Positions 11,905 to 63,235 of a stretch of 64,000 nt of DNA are shown in pieces; within the stretch, counting starts at the first letter, position 1; the number at the start of each line of letters is the position of its first letter. The stretch is from sequence record NC_070998.1; one strand, 5' to 3'. The notes beneath the pieces were generated by a model. It made no database searches. It was not told the DNA's origin and saw only the letters and a list, made by a program, of their open reading frames with translations. The position numbers were made by a program, and so were the translations under genes.

Positions 11905-13209
11905 TTACTTAACTATTTTTGTTATATCAATCTTAACCATCTTCAGTTGTGACATGTGGATACTTTTCATGCGGCCTAACATGATGTGGGTGAAGATAAG
12001 AACTGTTTCGGCAGAAACACGGTTTTGAATAGCACCAAGTTTTTCTCCGCAGCAAACCTTACAAAGGTTAAAGTCACCTTGTTCGCAGAACTGTGGAACT
12101 CTAAATTGCAGTGGTTTACCTAACAGTGCTTTATCGGCTTTAGTCAATACCTTTAGACCATCAGCGGTTTTATAATAACCACCTACCCAAGATCCGAAAC
12201 TAAAATCATTAAGCGTTACTGTTTCCGTTCTCGGGGTTTGACAATCTGTATCAATAGCTTCTATACGGTCAGTAAGAAGAATCATTACCTTAACTTCTGC
12301 GCCACCTTCACCTGTTGCATTGCCACGGTCATAAGAACCAGAAATAGCCGTATTTATATAAGCGGGATAGTTATCTTTATCCCAACCTTCATTCAACGAG
12401 TTACGAAGTAGCTGATACTTCCCGGTGTTGAAATCAGGAACCATATCAAAAACAACAAACATTTTCTTACGGGCGTTATCAATGAACTTCTTATCAATGA
12501 AGAAGTCTTTAGATGGACCGTTGTATTGAATAGAAGCATCAAGCGCTACAACTTCATCAATGACTTTAGCTACAGCTGCTGCATCATTGAGCTTATTCTC
12601 TTTCTCTAGTTCATTAAGTAACTTGTCTCGAAGCTTGATTACATCAGGATGTACTGTAAGAACATCTAGGGAAGATGCTTTAACAAATACATCATTAAGA
12701 CCTTCTAAGTAATCAAGGTTCTTGGTGATGTTAAGACATTGTGTTACAGAAGCTTTATCAGAGGGAATAGTTTCACCTTCTTTAGGATCATCTACCATGA
12801 TAGAGTCAATTAGACCACGTACTGTACCAGAGGTAATTGGTCCATTGATATAGCTTGCTGCATGTCCAACTGATTCGAAGAAAACTACTAAGTTGACTAA
12901 TAACAATCCTACTGTAGTTTCAATCTTCTCTTTAATGAATTCATGAACTGACATATCGACAGTGATTTTGTCGTTCTTATTAAATAGTGCTTTATCGTAC
13001 TCTGCGTGTTCTATAACGACTTTCTTACCTTCTTTAAGGAAATATACTTCCTTGGTGTCAGGATCGCGTAGAAGCGCATAAGGGATTGTTTTGAGCTTGT
13101 TATTGTTAGCTACAGAAGGAGTTACAATAGAGAATACTGAAAGTAGAAATGATTTACGATTGTAAGCTCTATTATTAATTGCTTCAAAGAGATAATCAAA
13201 CTTGTTCAT
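11905..13209 (-). CDS. rpoC: Virion RNA polymerase beta' subunit fragment (phiKZ gp80-like)
   Basis: SGSYDRGNATGEGGAEVK bridge-helix equivalent; DCQT and PQFCEQGDFNLCKVCCG zinc site; HIMLGRMKSIH trigger-loop equivalent. Confidence 0.85.
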   Translation of the reverse strand: MNKFDYLFEAINNRAYNRKSFLLSVFSIVTPSVANNNKLKTIPYALLRDPDTKEVYFLKEGKKVVIEHAEYDKALFNKNDKITVDMSVHEFIKEKIETTVGLLLVNLVVFFESVGHAASYINGPITSGTVRGLIDSIMVDDPKEGETIPSDKASVTQCLNITKNLDYLEGLNDVFVKASSLDVLTVHPDVIKLRDKLLNELEKENKLNDAAAVAKVIDEVVALDASIQYNGPSKDFFIDKKFIDNARKKMFVVFDMVPDFNTGKYQLLRNSLNEGWDKDNYPAYINTAISGSYDRGNATGEGGAEVKVMILLTDRIEAIDTDCQTPRTETVTLNDFSFGSWVGGYYKTADGLKVLTKADKALLGKPLQFRVPQFCEQGDFNLCKVCCGEKLGAIQNRVSAETVLIFTHIMLGRMKSIHMSQLKMVKIDITKIVK

Positions 13210-14080
13210 CTAGTTTAACCTTTTCCAATAGAGTTTGTGCTTTGTAAATCTCATCTATGTTTTCTGCCACTTCTTCTAACAAAGCGTAATACTGGGATTT
13301 GATTTGACCGTCAGTAAGATCAGAGATAAGCATCAGAGAAAGAACTTGCTTAAAGTAATCTAGTTTGTTCTCAGTGAGTTTAATCCCAAGATCAGAAACA
13401 AACAAGGTCATTAATACTTCTAGGGAGAGTGTAGAAGCCCCACCTTTCGTAATGTGTTCCCAAGCTAAGGTTTCTCTAAGAAACTCTTTATTAGCTTGTA
13501 CACGACGCTTAATGGTAGGTTCCATATATTCAGTGTCATCATTATCTAGGATATTCAAACCAATAAGAATACCTTTGGTAACGTTAGGAGAAACCTCCTT
13601 AATCATATAAGGGAAGTTTTCTAAATCGTAATTTGGTTCAACACGTTCAATGACGCGAATGAAACGCTCTTTAGCATCAATCAATTCGTCATCTAGAATC
13701 TCTACCAATTGCATGAGATCGTCCATTCCATCTAACGTATATATGGTGTCTAAAATGTGGACAAGATCTTTCAAGCTATCTGGTGAAACATAATCGTAAT
13801 CAATGATAATTCCCATCATCTGTAAACAATCTACTATGCTGTCGATCAGAAGTTTTCTGATATGCATAACAGTGTCAGATGTTTCAAGGGATTCATCAAT
13901 TAGGATATTGGTAATTTGAATATCGTTTCCATTCTCAGGAAGTGAGATAGAAATTAAGTTATACGCATCCTTGAATAATATAGCTGCTTCAGGCATTAGC
14001 CTTGCAGCAAAATCCTGCCACATCTCGCCTAAATTTTCTACAGCAAGATTTCTGTCTCCAAGATCAATTATCTCAGACAT
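13196..14080 (-). CDS. Conserved acidic helical protein, probable virion component
   Basis: 294-aa ORF overlapping the vRNAP gene start; late-like motif upstream. Confidence 0.8.
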   Translation of the reverse strand: MSEIIDLGDRNLAVENLGEMWQDFAARLMPEAAILFKDAYNLISISLPENGNDIQITNILIDESLETSDTVMHIRKLLIDSIVDCLQMMGIIIDYDYVSPDSLKDLVHILDTIYTLDGMDDLMQLVEILDDELIDAKERFIRVIERVEPNYDLENFPYMIKEVSPNVTKGILIGLNILDNDDTEYMEPTIKRRVQANKEFLRETLAWEHITKGGASTLSLEVLMTLFVSDLGIKLTENKLDYFKQVLSLMLISDLTDGQIKSQYYALLEEVAENIDEIYKAQTLLEKVKLDEQV

Positions 14081-14113: not shown

Positions 14114-14121
14114 CATAACAT
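14114..14121 (-). promoter_or_regulatory. Putative late promoter ATGTTATG
   Basis: Plus-strand CATAACAT, 33 nt before the 14080 start; ends in TATG like phiKZ late promoters. Confidence 0.4.
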
Positions 14122-14812
14122 GAGCAAAAAGGCCCAACAAAATGCAGCTGCAAAACGTGCGCGTCGTAACACTGCAAGTAAAGTAAAACGCAGTGATCGT
14201 AACGCAAAAGGTGTTAAGGTTTTGCCAGGTCGTAGACCCACACATAGCAATGAAGCACTGACTGCATTGGCACAAGCTCTCTCTCGTTCTAATCTTGATG
14301 ACCCCCTCCAGTATATTCTCGATGGTGGCAAAGGTGAAGGTGAATTCAATCCAGAGTCATTGATCAAAACCTCACGTAAAGCCGTAACTGAAGTTTACAA
14401 GCTGTTTAGTTATGTGACACTGGCTGAACGTTTGGTACAACAGAAAGCTTTTGTACATGAATTTACTTGTGATCTGGATCGTGTCACTAACGAGCTGATC
14501 GAAATTGACCGTCAGGTTATACGTTTGCCTAAACTTGCAGAAATCGATTTGGAGTCGTTCACCATCGATATGCTTGATATTGGTGGTTATGTAGAAAACC
14601 TTGCTGATCAACTTTACTCAGAAATTGAAGCACTTGAGAAACATAGTTACGTTATTGAAGACCGTCTCAATAAGGCAGCGCATGATTTCCAAGTCTCCCA
14701 CCCGGAAGTTACCGAACAGGATGCACGCCTGGTAATCATGGAAACCATTTCTCAGGAACGTGTTAATAAATTCCGTCAACTGCAACAACAAGCCGAAACT
14801 GCTGAGGTTTAA
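14120..14812 (+). CDS. Hypothetical protein with a highly basic N-terminal arm and helical body
   Basis: AAAGGAG SD; MSKKAQQNAAAKRARRNTASKVKRSDR. Confidence 0.85.
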   Translation: MSKKAQQNAAAKRARRNTASKVKRSDRNAKGVKVLPGRRPTHSNEALTALAQALSRSNLDDPLQYILDGGKGEGEFNPESLIKTSRKAVTEVYKLFSYVTLAERLVQQKAFVHEFTCDLDRVTNELIEIDRQVIRLPKLAEIDLESFTIDMLDIGGYVENLADQLYSEIEALEKHSYVIEDRLNKAAHDFQVSHPEVTEQDARLVIMETISQERVNKFRQLQQQAETAEV

Positions 14813-14814
14813 TA

Positions 14815-16449
14815 ATGTCTGAAGAAATTCAAACCCAAGAGTCCACTAAACCTATTAAACGGATTAAACCTGTCGAATATCTCCGAGAAGCCATCATCCA
14901 GGGTAAAGAAGCTAATCAAGCTTATTCTCTTCCTTTGTTCCTCGGTAGCTTGACTTCTCAACACGAAGCCATCCTTACCACTGCCACTGTATATGCGCAA
15001 CTTAAACAGGTTGACGACGACATTAACAGTGGGAATAGTAATATCTCTGAAAGCGTCCGTAACTCATTACGGGTTAAATTTGAAGAACTGCAAGAGAAAC
15101 ATTTCCCAGAAGTAGATCAAGATGAACTTGGAGTAATGTTGATCAACTACTTCCAGTTCTATCAACGTGGTTTGGATCGCGTACTTGCTCGAGAAGATAA
15201 TCAAGAGTTCATCGATCCATCTGTTCTGATGAATACTTTCCCATTCCGCAATGAACGTATTGGGATTATCAACCCGATTAAACCTCAAGTGAAAGCCAAG
15301 GACTCCGTACGCGACCGTATGCGTCGCAGTAAGCTTAAACTTGCTAATGAACCTGATACCTTCTCCCTGATGTTGGTTAACTCCCGCGTCTTCTTGAAGA
15401 TGAAAGTTCCTACTCCATTGGATATGGTTCTTCTCATTAACAAGATCACTACTGAGCTTAAGGGTTACGGAGAGCGTTATCGTGTCTCCTCCATGCATCT
15501 GGAACGAGCACTAATTACTCGTATCCTTGTGACCTTCATGTTGGAACGCGCCACCTATTGGTCTGTTGCGGATATTCTTGATGCAGAAGAACTGTTCAAC
15601 ATCATCAAGTTCGAAGACGTTGGTATTATTGCAACTACTCTTCTTGCCAACGCCGCTCCCAAGGGTGTGAGTTACACCATCTCCTGTTTGGCTGATAAGT
15701 GCGATTATAACGAGACCAATCTGATTGATCCAGCTAACCTTGTGGTTTATGACGATATTCGTCTACCGCAAGTTTATAAAGATCAAATTAGTGCGATCTT
15801 GAATACTGGTAAGAAGTTTACCATTGAAGAACTCAAAGCTTCAGATGTTCCCTACACTGACTTTGAAGGCAATCCAATCGATACTGTTGTTAAACATGAT
15901 AACGGCGCTGGCGAAGTTCATATCAAGTCACCTTATCTGGCTGATTACTTTACCTGCTTTGATAACATGGCCGAGCAGATCAACCCAGAACTTCGTGAAC
16001 TTGCTGTACAATTCCCTAATCAGAAAGTGTACGCAACTAAACGCGCTGAGGTAATGGGCTCTATCCGTATGGCCGAATATCTTCAGTGGTTTGATAAAAC
16101 CGTTACGTTGCCGGAACCTGGCGAAGATGGAGAACCTGAAGTAATTAGTCGTCAGGAAGATCCTAAAGGGTTTGATCAAGGTCTGCTTGATATGTTCAAT
16201 AGCGATGATAACTTGCTGCGCGATGCGCTGGATAAAGTCATTAAGAGTGTGCCTAAGTTGACCTATGTCTACATTGGTATTCCTGACGATCATTGTCCTA
16301 AGTGCAAAACTCGCGCTAATGATGTAATCAAGGAGATTAATGGAGGTTTCACTCCTATTGATCCAATTCTGAATTTTTTCGACCATACCCGGATGTTGAT
16401 AGCGATGCGACGAGATCTCGTGACTTTACAAGAGGAAATTCTTTCCTAA
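14815..16449 (+). CDS. Putative tail/baseplate assembly chaperone (gpG or T4 gp26-like), 544 aa
   Basis: CLADKC and HCPKC cysteine pairs; near-terminal PILNFF on a slippery heptamer; function inferred from architecture only. Confidence 0.6.
   Translation: MSEEIQTQESTKPIKRIKPVEYLREAIIQGKEANQAYSLPLFLGSLTSQHEAILTTATVYAQLKQVDDDINSGNSNISESVRNSLRVKFEELQEKHFPEVDQDELGVMLINYFQFYQRGLDRVLAREDNQEFIDPSVLMNTFPFRNERIGIINPIKPQVKAKDSVRDRMRRSKLKLANEPDTFSLMLVNSRVFLKMKVPTPLDMVLLINKITTELKGYGERYRVSSMHLERALITRILVTFMLERATYWSVADILDAEELFNIIKFEDVGIIATTLLANAAPKGVSYTISCLADKCDYNETNLIDPANLVVYDDIRLPQVYKDQISAILNTGKKFTIEELKASDVPYTDFEGNPIDTVVKHDNGAGEVHIKSPYLADYFTCFDNMAEQINPELRELAVQFPNQKVYATKRAEVMGSIRMAEYLQWFDKTVTLPEPGEDGEPEVISRQEDPKGFDQGLLDMFNSDDNLLRDALDKVIKSVPKLTYVYIGIPDDHCPKCKTRANDVIKEINGGFTPIDPILNFFDHTRMLIAMRRDLVTLQEEILS
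16374..16380 (+). other. Putative -1 programmed ribosomal frameshift site T TTT TTC
   Basis: In-frame AAT TTT TTC; the -1 frame is open from 16362 to TAA at 16886 and is the frame of ORF 16527. Confidence 0.72.
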
Positions 16450-16886
16450 GTAGCGATCAGTCCGGTCAGCTCCAACCAAGGTTCAAAGAGCAGAGTGATA
16501 AACTGCTCTTTGAAACCTACACCAACATGCCACAAAGTAAATTAGAGTTGTTGATTACAGAACGTAGAGCTTACATGATGAAGTTTGGTTGGGTTGCTGA
16601 TAGAGAACCCTTAAGTAACACAATCAAATATAATCGAGCTCGCAGAGACTCTAGTCATCAGTTCAGTGCGGCTGGAGTTGGAGAGATGTTCGGGTTTAGA
16701 GAATATGGCGAAATCTTACCTCTTAAAGATTTTCTGACTCTTCCGTGTAATGTATTAGAAGATATCATCGATTCTGTGGCCGTTGGTAAACGCAAAGCAA
16801 AAGAAGTCGCTGACCGTATGACCAAGAAAAACAAAGCCATCCCAGAGGCGGAACAACTTCTAAAACAACTTGAGAATAAGGATTAA
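16380..16886 (+). CDS. -1 frame extension (gpT or T4 gp51-like); fusion product about 690 aa
   Basis: Track ORF 16527-16886 lacks an SD; its frame runs without stops back to the slippery site; LPLKDFLTLPCNVLE resembles GT-type tails (inference). Confidence 0.68.
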   Translation, partial: RPYPDVDSDATRSRDFTRGNSFLSSDQSGQLQPRFKEQSDKLLFETYTNMPQSKLELLITERRAYMMKFGWVADREPLSNTIKYNRARRDSSHQFSAAGVGEMFGFREYGEILPLKDFLTLPCNVLEDIIDSVAVGKRKAKEVADRMTKKNKAIPEAEQLLKQLENKD

Positions 16887-16888
16887 CA

Positions 16889-17437
16889 ATGTCTAAAGCG
16901 CACGTCCCACCTGTAGTGGAACAAAACAAAACTGCCGTAGCGCAGCAACAAGCCGTTGTCGAGAAAATGGATACAAGTGTTATGGTCCCTACTGAGAAGG
17001 TACCTACTACACCCGCTACCATTTACCAAAATGGGATTGATAACTTTGTAAAGTTTATCAAGGGTGAATTTAAATCTGCTAGTTTGCAAGAACGTAGCAA
17101 CTATCAATGCGAGTTTATGGGTACGATCGTCCAGATGCTCTCTATTGACTCTGAGGAAGTAACCAAGGTACTTAACCACTTTATCGGAGTGATTCTCAAC
17201 AACCCTGTGCAGTTTGGTCAAAGTGAAATCTTTGCTCCACTGTACGTAGTTGAGAAAGAGAAAATGAAATCTGCTGACGAGATCCTTCGTTATAAGCAGT
17301 TCATGACTTTTATGGTGAGTTTGGCTAAGAACGCTCAGAACCGTCAACGTTTTGTAGCTAATGTTGATATGCGTAAACTGTTGAGTTACTTCCCTAAGAA
17401 AGCAGCTGACAATCTGCAAGAGTATTGTTTCCGTTAA
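16889..17437 (+). CDS. Conserved hypothetical helical protein, 182 aa
   Basis: TAAGGA SD; 2 nt after the previous stop. Confidence 0.85.
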   Translation: MSKAHVPPVVEQNKTAVAQQQAVVEKMDTSVMVPTEKVPTTPATIYQNGIDNFVKFIKGEFKSASLQERSNYQCEFMGTIVQMLSIDSEEVTKVLNHFIGVILNNPVQFGQSEIFAPLYVVEKEKMKSADEILRYKQFMTFMVSLAKNAQNRQRFVANVDMRKLLSYFPKKAADNLQEYCFR

Positions 17438-17446
17438 TACATAAAT

Positions 17447-17478
17447 AACCTACCTAACCGTAATTGGTTAGGTAGGTT
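17447..17478. terminator. Bidirectional terminator, CTACCTAACC family
   Basis: AACCTACCTAACC-GTAATT-GGTTAGGTAGGTT. Confidence 0.85.
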
Positions 17479-17486
17479 TATGTTTG

Positions 17487-18410
17487 TTATTTGGAGATCA
17501 ACTCACGAACCCCTTCCATTACTTGGTTGATTTTAATAATTTTGGCATCACAATAATTAATTAAACTTGTTAGGTTATTAGATACAGCAACCAATTTCTT
17601 ACATAAAGATTTAACCTTATCAGAATGAAGATTAGACTCTATATCGGAACTATTTTCTTGCCTTTTAGCTAGTTCATTATTGTGTTCAAGATCTTTAGTA
17701 ACTTCGGCCAGGGTCTCGGTAACTATCGCTCTCATCTTACTAAATAATTTTTGTAATTCAACGAGTGGGGGAGTTGCTTCAAAAATGCTAACTCGCTCGT
17801 TATTTTCGTTATAAAAGTATTTAGTTGCATGTTTTTCAGTTATTACGCCAATGCGACTATTTATCTCTTCCAATTGTGCCGCTTTAGATCTTAGATCTGA
17901 TATGGAGATCCCTGGTATTTCCTTTAACCTAGATCCTACAATCCCTGTAGTAAACATATCTTCACTGTATTTGCGTGTAAAGGTCTCGCATTTGTCAGTT
18001 TCTAACTTAATTTTTTCATTATCCATTAATCTTTCAATGCGACTCCTTTCCAATCGATAAGGATCAAAATCCTTATCATTCCGTTTACCCATAATTTCCT
18101 TGCTGACTTTCTCAGTATTTTTTACAGCGTCATCAATCACTTTAGCTTGTTTAGAGCCTTTACTACCAAAGAAGAAATCACGTATTGCTTTAATAAAGTT
18201 TTTAATCATTTCATAAACTTTAGTAGCGCCAGCTTTAACAGAAGACATGAACCCTTCTGTTCCAGATCGGTGTTTAAAATCAACACCGTTGAGTTTAAGA
18301 ACTGTTTTAGCATAAACTGAATCTGGTGATTCTAGATCACCATTAGACAGGGATTCAAAACCATTCAAAGTACTTAATACATGTTCTAAATTATCAATAT
18401 TAACATTCAT
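17487..18410 (-). CDS. Internal-head-protein paralogue of 40000-40893
   Basis: YAKTVLKLNG...GTEGF...IRDFFFGSKGSKQ aligns with YAMTVLKLRG...GCESW...IKEFFFGEGEKQ. Confidence 0.8.
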   Translation of the reverse strand: MNVNIDNLEHVLSTLNGFESLSNGDLESPDSVYAKTVLKLNGVDFKHRSGTEGFMSSVKAGATKVYEMIKNFIKAIRDFFFGSKGSKQAKVIDDAVKNTEKVSKEIMGKRNDKDFDPYRLERSRIERLMDNEKIKLETDKCETFTRKYSEDMFTTGIVGSRLKEIPGISISDLRSKAAQLEEINSRIGVITEKHATKYFYNENNERVSIFEATPPLVELQKLFSKMRAIVTETLAEVTKDLEHNNELAKRQENSSDIESNLHSDKVKSLCKKLVAVSNNLTSLINYCDAKIIKINQVMEGVRELISK

Positions 18411-60797: not shown

Positions 60798-62906
60798 ATG
60801 CTAGACAATGTAGAGTTTAACGCTTATATCCAAAAGACGATCGCATTTGCTCGTACTATTGTGATTAAGTGCGAAGATCTCGCATTGCTTGATAACCGGT
60901 TGATGGAACAGTACTACGGGATTAACTCCGGGACAGATAAGTCCAAATGGCGTTATTATCTCCACCTCAATGGCGAGTATCATAGCACTGATGAGATCAT
61001 GAAAGTTCAGTCACTAGATAATGGTGACGTTATTGATTTTACAAAGGCTAATCTGGATATTCATCCAGCCACTAAACGCGCATATAGACTAGGTAGTTAC
61101 TACTACACTAGACTTACGGAAAAATATCCAGCTCAGTCTAATTTGATTAACGGTATTATAAACCCGATTCCGCCTTCGGAATCCATACCAGCAAATAATT
61201 ACCAAATCCTAAGATATAACAAAGATTATGTTCTTTGGAATGAGTATCAGTTGATTCCTGCTTTGCAAGAACATATTAATACCATGGTGTTGACATCTTT
61301 TAAAACTGAATACCTGTATACAGATAACTTGATGTTAACTATTTTACTGGGTAATTTATATGCTTCACTAGTCTCAGCTATTTTGATGATAAGGGAAGAG
61401 GCAGAAGGTACACGTTATGTGCACGAATTCCACATATGGTCAAAGTTAACAAGTCATGGCATTAGTCCGATCTATAAATCGGTACTTGATAACAAACAAA
61501 CAATGTGGCTATATCGCAATATAGATTGGGTACTTCGCAAACAAGGTAGAATCCAAACCTTTGACTCTTTAGTGGATATTATTCTTACTCACAGAAATAT
61601 ACCGCTAGCAAGACATGAAGCTCTACAGACCACCACTGACCAACTAGATAATTTAGTTCCTACTCCAGCGTTTATTTCTAGACCAGTCAACTTACAAAAT
61701 AGACTTGGGTTATCAAGCCGGATGTTAACTGTTAGTGAGTTGATAGTTAAGGAAAACAAAGTTGCTATTGATAATGCGCAGGAAGAGTCCTACAGCATTG
61801 CAACAGCGGAGTACAACATCTCCACCGGTGTACACTCGGACATCCCTACAAAGGTGTTAGAGTCCACTATGGTGGATGCCACAGATCGTAATCCCAATAC
61901 GATCATGCGTGTCCTCCATAATCACTGGATTTATTTAGCGGCTAATGATATTTATCAAATCAACCACGATTTTGTTGACTTTAGATCCGGAACGCGCTTT
62001 AAATTATCCACTAAAGACGCCTACATTCTCTGGGCTTACTTACTAGATAGAAATAGGAAAACGACCCAAGAACATATCCCTGCTTATACTTACTTTAACG
62101 TAAGGAAGATCCTACCTCCTAACTATCTTGTCTTAATGGGATTAGGAGATAAAGATATTCTTACTGAGGATGTTGCAAAAGACATTCTTAAAGTAACTGT
62201 TGAGTATTCAAGGATTATTTCTCCTGACGTGTTTTTCCTTAAAGCAAAAGAGATCTTTGATAAACAGTGGGATCATCGTAAACTTTATTCCAGAGTACTG
62301 AACCTTTTTACTCACACCAGAGTTAAAAATGCGGTAGAGAGTTTATACGAAACTGGTGCTGTTAAGCTAACCAATAAAACACGGTATAAAGATTGGTTGA
62401 CTAGACTAGAACTTAACTTTGATGATTACAGTGAAGATGATTGTTTAGAATTAGCTTGGAACATCTGGAAGAAAGTGACCGGATGGGAAAATGCAGCTTT
62501 CATGACAATAGCCGATCAACAGAAACAGTTGATTAACTTGATGAAAGATCTCACCAGCTACACCGTTCAGTACATCGGTTCTACTACTGAAGGTGAGGTA
62601 GAAGGACAAATCCAGTTAATGGATTTAGTTGATTCTGATATTTGGTCTCCTAATTCAGAAACCGGTTTAGAGTCTGATAATAAAGATCAACTTGTACTAG
62701 ATGCATTAAAGGGTACCAAAGAAGCTAGTTTAACAGCTAAAGAGCATAGAGGTTCCCCAGAAGGTAATATGGTGGATCACTTAGAAATCGAATCGATTGG
62801 TTCTGGTGATATTCCTATTAATAGTTATTTGAAATATGTGGAAACTGAACCCGATTTCTCTCCATTCCATTTAAACGTCGGGCTAAGGCTTCGAGAAGCT
62901 GTTTAA
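60798..62906 (+). CDS. Baseplate/tail structural protein (phiKZ gp128-like), 702 aa
   Basis: TAGGA SD; KWRYYLHLNGEYH N-terminal motif; divergent from the portal. Confidence 0.65.
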   Translation: MLDNVEFNAYIQKTIAFARTIVIKCEDLALLDNRLMEQYYGINSGTDKSKWRYYLHLNGEYHSTDEIMKVQSLDNGDVIDFTKANLDIHPATKRAYRLGSYYYTRLTEKYPAQSNLINGIINPIPPSESIPANNYQILRYNKDYVLWNEYQLIPALQEHINTMVLTSFKTEYLYTDNLMLTILLGNLYASLVSAILMIREEAEGTRYVHEFHIWSKLTSHGISPIYKSVLDNKQTMWLYRNIDWVLRKQGRIQTFDSLVDIILTHRNIPLARHEALQTTTDQLDNLVPTPAFISRPVNLQNRLGLSSRMLTVSELIVKENKVAIDNAQEESYSIATAEYNISTGVHSDIPTKVLESTMVDATDRNPNTIMRVLHNHWIYLAANDIYQINHDFVDFRSGTRFKLSTKDAYILWAYLLDRNRKTTQEHIPAYTYFNVRKILPPNYLVLMGLGDKDILTEDVAKDILKVTVEYSRIISPDVFFLKAKEIFDKQWDHRKLYSRVLNLFTHTRVKNAVESLYETGAVKLTNKTRYKDWLTRLELNFDDYSEDDCLELAWNIWKKVTGWENAAFMTIADQQKQLINLMKDLTSYTVQYIGSTTEGEVEGQIQLMDLVDSDIWSPNSETGLESDNKDQLVLDALKGTKEASLTAKEHRGSPEGNMVDHLEIESIGSGDIPINSYLKYVETEPDFSPFHLNVGLRLREAV

Positions 62907-62914
62907 GGATAAAT

Positions 62915-63235
62915 ATGCAACGACTAAAAGACCGTTATCCTGATAGTCGTTCTTTCCATGTATTGGCTAATCAAGAACAGGAAGTTTTACTCCTACTTGA
63001 TAACAGACATGTGAAACACGAAAAGGATAACTTAGCATATCTCACTGGAATACTAGATAAAACGAATAAACCTGATTTAAATGAGCGTGATGTTGTAAGT
63101 CACGTATTTGAAAAGTATCCGTTTTTGTATTCCGAAGATATCGAAAAGATACAAGAGTTTGATAACTACTTTACGGTAAGTGTTTATCCTAATACACTTA
63201 TTCACTTTGGACAGTTTAATATCTATAAGGGTTAA
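62915..63235 (+). CDS. Small virion-operon protein, 106 aa
   Basis: TAAGGA SD; packed in the operon. Confidence 0.75.
   Translation: MQRLKDRYPDSRSFHVLANQEQEVLLLLDNRHVKHEKDNLAYLTGILDKTNKPDLNERDVVSHVFEKYPFLYSEDIEKIQEFDNYFTVSVYPNTLIHFGQFNIYKG

Follow-up and report, generated by a model that had tools for sequence, protein, structure and literature searches.

In phage lambda, the tail assembly proteins gpG and gpGT are related by a -1 slip on a heptanucleotide near the 3' end of the upstream open reading frame (ORF), and the same arrangement underlies gpE and E+E' of phage P2 and the equivalent proteins of phage Mu. A conserved -1 frameshift of tail assembly genes was reportedly described by Xu, Hendrix and Duda in 2004. 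In Escherichia coli, the tau and gamma isoforms of the dnaX product result from a tandem -1 slip of the bacterial type on a homopolymeric heptamer. This site is accompanied by an upstream Shine–Dalgarno-like element and a downstream hairpin, and the shifted frame ends almost at once to give the shorter product. Gene 26 of phage T4 also makes a second product, in this case by internal initiation. Here, we examine two adjacent genes of Aeromonas phage PS1 (MN032614.2, genus Ferozepurvirus, 237 kb), PS1_0082 (ORF1) and PS1_0083 (ORF2), which lie in a window of 64,000 nucleotides taken from sequence record NC_070998.1. Comparison with related phages points to a programmed -1 ribosomal frameshift at a run of thymines (T-run) near the end of ORF1, so that ORF1 and ORF2 would constitute one recoded gene with isoforms of 544 and approximately 690 amino acids (aa). 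We assign this reading a probability of roughly 0.8. We are more confident still that the C-terminal extension encoded beyond the T-run would be expressed by a change of frame at that site.

The elements on which the argument depends are listed below; a position in the window equals the position in MN032614.2 minus 62000.

14815-16449, plus strand: ORF1 (PS1_0082), 544 aa, stop codon at 16447-16449; matches phrog_4585 (E 3.2e-86), for which no function is known
16362-16449, plus strand: dual-coding overlap, in which ORF1 (0 frame) runs through its final 29 sense codons and its stop while the open -1 frame begins
16374-16380, plus strand: candidate slippery heptamer T TTT TTC in the phase of ORF1, encoding Phe521-Phe522
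16380-16886, plus strand: -1-frame extension, 168 codons and a stop, which would supply the C-terminus of the long isoform (about 522 + 168 residues)
16450-16526, plus strand: annotated 'intergenic gap', which codes in the -1 frame and contains no ATG, GTG or TTG in that frame
16527-16886, plus strand: ORF2 as annotated (PS1_0083), 119 aa, phrog_19747 (likewise with no known function), stop codon at 16884-16886; corresponds to the part of the extension after its first ATG

Reading frames and start signals in PS1

Between 16369 and 16383, ORF1 reads CTG AAT TTT TTC GAC, which places an X XXY YYZ heptamer, T TTT TTC, in the ORF1 phase at 16374-16380. The last stop of the -1 frame ahead of this site occupies 16359-16361, and from 16362 to 16886 the frame is open. 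This is the frame of ORF2, and it offers no ATG, GTG or TTG until 16527. Both the in-phase heptamer and the open frame had been pointed out in a first-pass annotation made from the letters of the window, and both are present as described there. The arrangement exceeds chance: among the 75 in-phase XXXYYYZ heptamers in window ORFs of at least 100 aa, the site at 16374 is followed by much the longest open -1 frame (168 codons versus a median of 5).

The annotated start of ORF2 differs from those of its neighbors. We found no purine-rich Shine–Dalgarno sequence in the 25 nt preceding ATG 16527, whereas the neighboring starts are preceded by AAGGAG (14120), GAGG (14815) and AAGGA (16889). The spacings in this operon are 2 nt (14812 to 14815), 77 nt (16449 to 16527) and 2 nt (16886 to 16889). 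The first-pass annotation had remarked on the missing Shine–Dalgarno sequence and on the anomalous gap, and it was right on both counts. Neither a promoter-like nor a terminator-like site could be found in the gap (16450-16526), and no Rfam family matches there.

All annotated records that we examined present the two homologues as separate genes for 'hypothetical proteins', with inconsistent starts. On that account, ORF2 begins independently at ATG 16527 (or at 16575, 48 nt later, where sister Ferozepurvirus genomes place the start), the 77-nt gap is a non-coding spacer, and the heptamer is nothing but two conserved Phe codons. These codons are indeed conserved at the protein level: Phe521 and Phe522 are invariant in an alignment of 21 family members and conserved to at least 90% in alignments of 126 and 88 members; the mean identity in these three alignments is approximately 17–20%. 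Moreover, in some genomes an ATG follows closely on the end of ORF1, in one case with a ribosome-binding site marked by the annotator. The absence of a Shine–Dalgarno sequence at 16527 speaks against an independent start, as do the comparisons described in the next section.

One further motif lies just 5' of the ORF1 stop. GAGGA at 16432-16436, followed after three bases by TCTTTC, is identical in 15 of 15 aligned genomes. In the -1 frame it is not followed by a start codon. Its identity can be ascribed to dual coding, since the same letters would be read as Glu-Glu in the 0 frame of ORF1 and as Arg-Gly and Ser-Phe in the -1 frame.

Conservation of the site, the frame and the gap

According to tblastn searches, homologues of ORF1 and ORF2 are neighbors in phiKZ-like jumbo phages that infect many different hosts. 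We surveyed 34 genomes (30 phage records and four IMG/VR genomes) from 17 named genera plus unclassified phages. The identity of their ORF1 homologues to that of PS1 ranges from 99% down to approximately 20–27%, the lowest values being those of EL, RisingSun, Miami, Vibrio phages, PhiPA3, OMKO1 (phiKZ-type), SPN3US, Goslar and Ea35-70. In every one of the 34 genomes, the ORF2 homologue lies in the -1 frame of the ORF1 homologue, although many indels alter the spacing between them. Again in 34 of 34, the -1 frame is uninterrupted between a point ahead of the T-run and the end of the downstream ORF. An in-phase T TTT TTC/T/A occurs 36–75 nt ahead of the end of ORF1 in all genomes but one (33/34). 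Conservation of the heptamer and of the open frame in orthologues was the check that the first-pass annotation had proposed for itself, and its frameshift is strongly supported by this comparison.

Two details of the site and its frame deserve mention. The base ahead of the two Phe codons is T whether the codon to which it belongs specifies Asn, Thr, Ser, Gly, Val or Leu, which argues that the nucleotide is kept and not the residue. A conserved Phe-Phe dipeptide would not account for this. In many genomes, the -1 frame opens only shortly 5' of the T-run. In OMKO1, for example, eight stops interrupt the -1 frame over the 150 nt that lead up to the site, and the following 84 codons are free of stops.

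The positions of possible start codons are difficult to reconcile with two independent genes. Across genomes, the earliest ATG, GTG or TTG of the -1 frame may precede the end of ORF1 by up to 141 nt or follow it by up to 219 nt, a spread of 360 nt, and in OMKO1 the earliest possible start lies 219 nt past that end. In contrast, the distance from the T-run to the ORF2 stop is constant at 153–179 codons (26 genomes), against 69–143 aa for ORF2 as annotated. In the same 26 genomes, the 0-frame tail after the slippery site measures 11–24 codons. The deposited starts of ORF2 homologues leave gaps of 17–236 nt after ORF1, and even within Ferozepurvirus the gap is given as either 77 or 125 nt. We regard this inconsistency as a symptom: the annotated starts would disagree because no real start exists.

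The gap itself carries the marks of a coding sequence. Between the T-run and the annotated ORF2 start, 1359 -1-frame codons from 26 genomes contain no stop, as compared with 69 stops in the 0 frame and 145 in the +1 frame. Substitutions were counted past the ORF1 stop, where ORF1 imposes no constraint, in six independent genome pairs; they distribute as 32:34:74 over the three -1-frame codon positions (chi-square of approximately 24, 2 degrees of freedom). Within Ferozepurvirus, five genomes differ in the gap by three single substitutions, all at the third position of -1-frame codons. In addition, the -1 translations of different genera can be aligned over the part that precedes every start codon. 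The PS1 translation has two motifs there: R-P-Y-P, immediately behind the T-run, and R-G-N-S-F-L, which spans the ORF1 stop. In the PS1/OBP clade, 14 of 14 genomes agree at positions 1, 2 and 4 of the former and at every position but the third of the latter. Judged by these patterns, the -1 frame is the coding frame all the way from the T-run to annotated ORF2. With the same frame relation in every genome surveyed, no stop in the gap, residues conserved upstream of any start, a third-position excess and an extension of constant length attached to a wandering 'start', we consider it very unlikely that ORF1 and ORF2 are independent genes.

The overlap shows the constraint that is expected of a sequence read in two frames. 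Among identical ORF1 residues, the same codon is used at a rate of 0.73 in the overlap compared to 0.50 in the gene body (13 genomes), and the final window of the overlap, at 0.72, is the highest of the whole of ORF1. Such raised synonymous conservation is what dual coding predicts. Consistent with dual coding, the segment 16300-16640 is 98% identical among the five Ferozepurvirus genomes, as against 88–94% for the surrounding 4 kb. The 0-frame tail that follows Phe-Phe is conserved as well within the PS1 clade: in the 21-member alignment, columns 523, 529, 532, 540 and 544 are at least 90% conserved and column 543 is invariant. Since the 0-frame tail is conserved along with the -1 frame, both products appear to be under selection.

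We also searched for an uninterrupted version of the gene. A profile built from 21 ORF1 homologues, run on 1.84 billion representative protein sequences, retrieved 865 family members with E ≤ 0.001. Among the 150 matches listed of these 865, the match typically ends at about profile position 520, that is at Phe-Phe, and the protein ends 10–25 residues further on; the few longer proteins in this set have N-terminal additions. No uninterrupted form of approximately 690 aa was found among the 150 listed of the 865 matches, nor among 20 word-index matches. Homopolymer runs are prone to sequencing error, and one might suspect that an assembly error, or a recently broken gene, has split what is truly a single uninterrupted ORF. 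Against this, 34 genomes that were sequenced independently, by many laboratories and on many platforms, show the same arrangement, the 0-frame sequence beyond the run is conserved too, and no intact form occurs among the matches listed, so that this explanation can safely be set aside. Instead, the split layout seems to be kept throughout the family, as would be expected if a fixed ratio of two isoforms matters.

Ribosomal or transcriptional slippage

The most economical model places the event on the ribosome. Most ribosomes translating ORF1 would reach the stop at 16447-16449 and release the major, 544-aa protein, which ends in a short predicted helix. Some would slip back by one base on T TTT TTC, with the two tRNA-Phe re-pairing from UUU UUC to UUU UUU, and would then read the -1 frame through the start-free gap and annotated ORF2 to the stop at 16884-16886. 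The resulting minor isoform of approximately 690 aa would have its C-terminal helix exchanged for a linker that is rich in Pro and probably flexible, followed by approximately 120 residues that form a mainly helical domain. Both isoforms may be needed in a fixed ratio. AlphaFold (AF2) models were obtained for the two pieces. That of ORF1 (mean predicted confidence, pLDDT, 77; predicted template-modeling score, pTM, 0.79) contains a C-terminal helix of residues 517-543 that begins just before the slippery site, and that of the extension is poor (pLDDT 46), with the first 48 residues disordered and a long C-terminal helix suggested.

This programmed -1 frameshift is strongly supported because the frame relation, the heptamer, the open -1 frame, the constant length of the extension and the coding character of the gap are all conserved, and because no fused form is among the matches listed. 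The conservation of site, phase and open frame, the coding of the gap, the dual coding of the overlap and the extent of all these across the family are, at the level of genome comparison, shown.

A number of observations weigh against it. In PhiPA3, the one exception in the survey, the heptamer is imperfect: the sequence is G TTT TTT, with the six T in phase as two Phe codons. In AH04, OBP, SXP01, Miami and phiKT1028, an ATG lies 27–48 nt past the ORF1 stop, and a free ORF2 product may therefore also be made. The trans-frame protein of approximately 690 aa is a prediction from sequence comparison. Finally, three approaches failed to reveal a stimulatory RNA. Single-sequence folding of the 90 nt 3' of the T-run in 26 genomes gave structures no more stable than those of shuffled sequences (z-scores of approximately 0), RNAalifold on 15 genomes gave -3.3 kcal/mol with zero compensatory pairs, and an Rfam search returned no match. 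The closest GGAGG lies 27 nt upstream of the slippery site. A downstream hairpin or pseudoknot, or a suitably spaced upstream Shine–Dalgarno-like sequence, is usual at -1 sites without being obligatory. The PS1 site shares with dnaX the bacterial-type tandem slip on a homopolymeric heptamer and the two isoforms of one protein; it differs in that no stimulator was found and in that the shifted frame leads to the longer product.

The missing stimulator is one reason to consider slippage during transcription. If a phage or host RNA polymerase stuttered on the T-run, one extra U in some of the mRNAs would bring the downstream sequence into the ORF1 frame and so produce the same two isoforms. The conserved element is a homopolymer of 6–8 T, PhiPA3 keeps a T6 run without the exact phase of the heptamer, and phiKZ-like phages use unusual multisubunit polymerases of their own, a subunit of which is encoded at 11905-13209 in this window. 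However, the run consists of exactly six T in 18 of 26 genomes, which is short for slippage by multisubunit polymerases, and the second Phe codon is usually TTC, so that there is no sign of selection for a longer run. Furthermore, the phase of the run is kept in 33 of the 34 genomes, and phase matters to ribosomes and not to polymerases. We therefore consider polymerase stuttering improbable, and a ribosomal frame change the likely one.

The ORF1 family, its locus and its possible function

ORF1 belongs to the phiKZ gp077 family (phrog_4585), both by sequence and by the synteny of gp078 to gp080. The PhiPA3 record equates PhiPA3 gp074 with phiKZ gp077, 201phi2-1 gp136 and EL ORF047, and the downstream PhiPA3 gp073 with 201phi2-1 gp135; the Goslar counterpart of ORF1 is gp081. 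With tblastn, a member of the ORF1 family matches the phiKZ genome under feature PHIKZ077. When a distant member served as the tblastn query, 269 phage records were matched, and the profile search mentioned above gives the size of the family as 865 database proteins. The PS1 record does not contain a family name, but the gp077 homology and the neighboring counterparts of gp078, gp079 and gp080 justify the term 'phiKZ-like', which the first-pass annotation had chosen. The surroundings of the pair and two conserved motifs within ORF1 are as follows.

11905-13209, minus strand: counterpart of phiKZ gp080, a virion RNA polymerase subunit; phrog_2962
13196-14080, minus strand: counterpart of phiKZ gp079, named 'virion structural' in several records
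14120-14812, plus strand: gene preceding ORF1 in the operon, 230 aa; by synteny a homologue of phiKZ gp078, no family match
15685-15702, plus strand: first half of a putative four-Cys metal site (Cys291 and Cys296 of ORF1), conserved in family alignments
16294-16305, plus strand: second half of the putative four-Cys site (Cys494-Pro-Lys-Cys497 of ORF1), 23 codons 5' of the slippery site
16889-17437, plus strand: downstream gene of the same operon, 182 aa; phrog_14374, function not known
17447-17478, both strands: near-perfect terminator-like hairpin of 13–14 bp that closes the operon, between the convergent genes 16889-17437 (plus) and 17487-18410 (minus)

The convergent gene at 17487-18410 encodes a 307-aa protein with weak matches to a FadA-like coiled coil and to PF12699, the family of phiKZ internal head proteins (E 0.082); it also matches several PHROGs of unknown function. 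Elsewhere in the window, ORF 60798-62906 (702 aa, phrog_3222, function unknown) contains an in-phase T TTA AAC approximately 30 nt before its stop. The -1 frame that follows is open for 119 codons and includes ORF 62915-63235 (106 aa). The latter is preceded by an AAGGA and begins with an ATG of its own, and it is more simply explained by independent initiation.

The first-pass annotation had described the pair as G/GT-like, or else as resembling gp26 and gp51 of T4, with no tape-measure gene beside it. The last point is correct, since the neighbors are the gp078 to gp080 homologues and the 182-aa protein of unknown function. The comparison with G/GT holds for the layout. As in lambda and its relatives, the slip would occur near the 3' end of the upstream ORF, leave a short 0-frame tail and add a separate -1-frame domain at the C-terminus; both frames are conserved, the arrangement is kept across a whole phage group, and the products are apparently outside the virion. 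In contrast to the G/GT type, the heptamer of the PS1 family is an all-T run, the upstream product of 544 aa is about five times larger than a G protein (~100–150 aa), and ORF1 is located beside virion RNA polymerase genes and not between the tube and tape-measure genes. There is also no detectable relation, in sequence or fold, to any family of tail assembly chaperones. Neither piece matches such a family in Pfam, PHROGs or NCBIfam, and the Foldseek comparison that the first-pass annotation had suggested found no better match named 'tail assembly chaperone' than one with an E value of 1.6. 'G/GT' is thus only an analogy of gene layout, and membership fails on position, size and family. A separate observation concerns the family member P0070, residues 47-107 of which match NCBIfam 'phage tail assembly chaperone G' with an E value of 0.0077 and 16.5 bits, below the cut-off of 25; this match is probably due to chance.

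The comparison with T4 fared better in part. T4 gp26 and gp51 are listed as baseplate hub assembly chaperones (PMC3004832). In a Foldseek search of BFVD, a collection of predicted viral structures, the ORF1 model retrieved its own family first. The next matches are named 'Baseplate hub assembly protein, bacteriophage T4-like', 'Baseplate hub subunit' and 'Baseplate hub assembly chaperone' (probability 0.8–1.0, E 2.7e-4 to 2e-2, target TM score of approximately 0.4–0.5), all of them predicted structures. Furthermore, the family member P0086 exceeds the threshold of the Pfam family PF12322 'T4_baseplate' (25.5 versus 24.5 bits) and a second member comes close; the PS1 protein itself gives no match. 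Annotators of the homologues in RisingSun, LAh10, ZPAH34, KPN8 and pEa_SNUABM_43 have called them 'ZipA-like cell division protein', 'baseplate protein' or 'baseplate hub assembly protein'. The last of these labels agrees with the Foldseek result. We rejected the ZipA-like label, for which Pfam provides no support in the PS1 protein. Taken together, the predicted structures and the one borderline Pfam match give moderate support to a remote relationship between the ORF1 family and the T4 gp26/gp51-type baseplate-hub assembly proteins.

Differences from the T4 type are also evident. The ORF1 family is approximately 2.5 times larger, with some 280 extra N-terminal residues, the PS1 protein stays below Pfam significance, and its gene is not adjacent to hub genes. 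We know of no frameshift extension in the T4 gp26/gp51 proteins. The ORF1 alignments reveal a further conserved feature, in that Cys291, Cys296 and Cys494 are invariant among 21, 126 and 88 members and Cys497 is conserved to at least 90% in the 126-member alignment. These four residues probably form a metal site that bridges two parts of the fold. One family member shows a weak match to the I-TevI zinc finger.

Published data on homologues are consistent with a protein that is not part of the virion. Churi gp256, the equivalent of phiKZ gp077, was detected among the non-structural proteins by proteomics 15 min after infection (PMC11849849), which fits this view. A preprint on the cryo-electron microscopy of Goslar assigns the whole hub and inner-baseplate density, and its main text mentions neither gp81 nor gp82, the Goslar pair; in this respect, the Goslar homologue would resemble the T4 type. 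The protein called 'gp77' in that preprint was rejected as a counterpart, being a different protein, a capsid decorator. Likewise, gp76 and gp77 of PCH45 in a Tn-seq preprint follow another numbering and are not counterparts.

To be set on the other side of the balance is that detection of Churi gp256 at 15 min is early for a tail assembly factor, and that the ORF1 gene adjoins virion RNA polymerase genes and not tail genes. PF12322 is matched at E ≤ 0.01 by only 2 of 88 distant family members, the PS1 protein not being one of them. The ORF1 model found no match in the PDB by Foldseek (best E 0.17), and sequence searches of the PDB with ORF1, the -1 piece and family profiles were negative, as were Pfam and NCBIfam searches with the PS1 pieces. 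Given this mixture, we put the chances of a hub or tail assembly function at about even. A chaperone function, too, is inferred. The protein may be a non-virion assembly factor for the baseplate hub or the tail, a relative of the gp26/gp51 type, and the extension may provide another surface for binding, comparable to the T part of lambda gpGT.

A more specific scenario starts from the fact that phiKZ-like phages have no recognized G/GT chaperone. A greatly enlarged hub assembly protein of the gp26/gp51 type, not homologous to G/GT, may run the same logic of two isoforms in a fixed ratio, with the extension docking a second partner such as the tube initiator or the tail-length protein. We offer this scenario tentatively and regard it as somewhat doubtful.

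We found no earlier report of a frameshift in the gp077 family in the open-access literature or on bioRxiv. The recoding mechanism and its logic are known; what is different is the protein family and the genomic setting, and the conservation across a whole phage family. The finding would re-annotate a conserved gene pair that includes phiKZ gp077 and its downstream ORF, with equivalents in PhiPA3, 201phi2-1, Goslar, SPN3US, EL and OBP. It provides the first candidate programmed frameshift for the heavily studied nucleus-forming phages, and it would connect a protein of unknown function to baseplate-hub assembly. The site also represents a natural all-U slippery sequence that is conserved without an obvious stimulatory structure. 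If the scenario of an enlarged gp26/gp51-type protein is true, the ORF1 family would be a case of convergent recoding in tail assembly, and of a family-wide -1 frameshift that works without a recognizable RNA stimulator.

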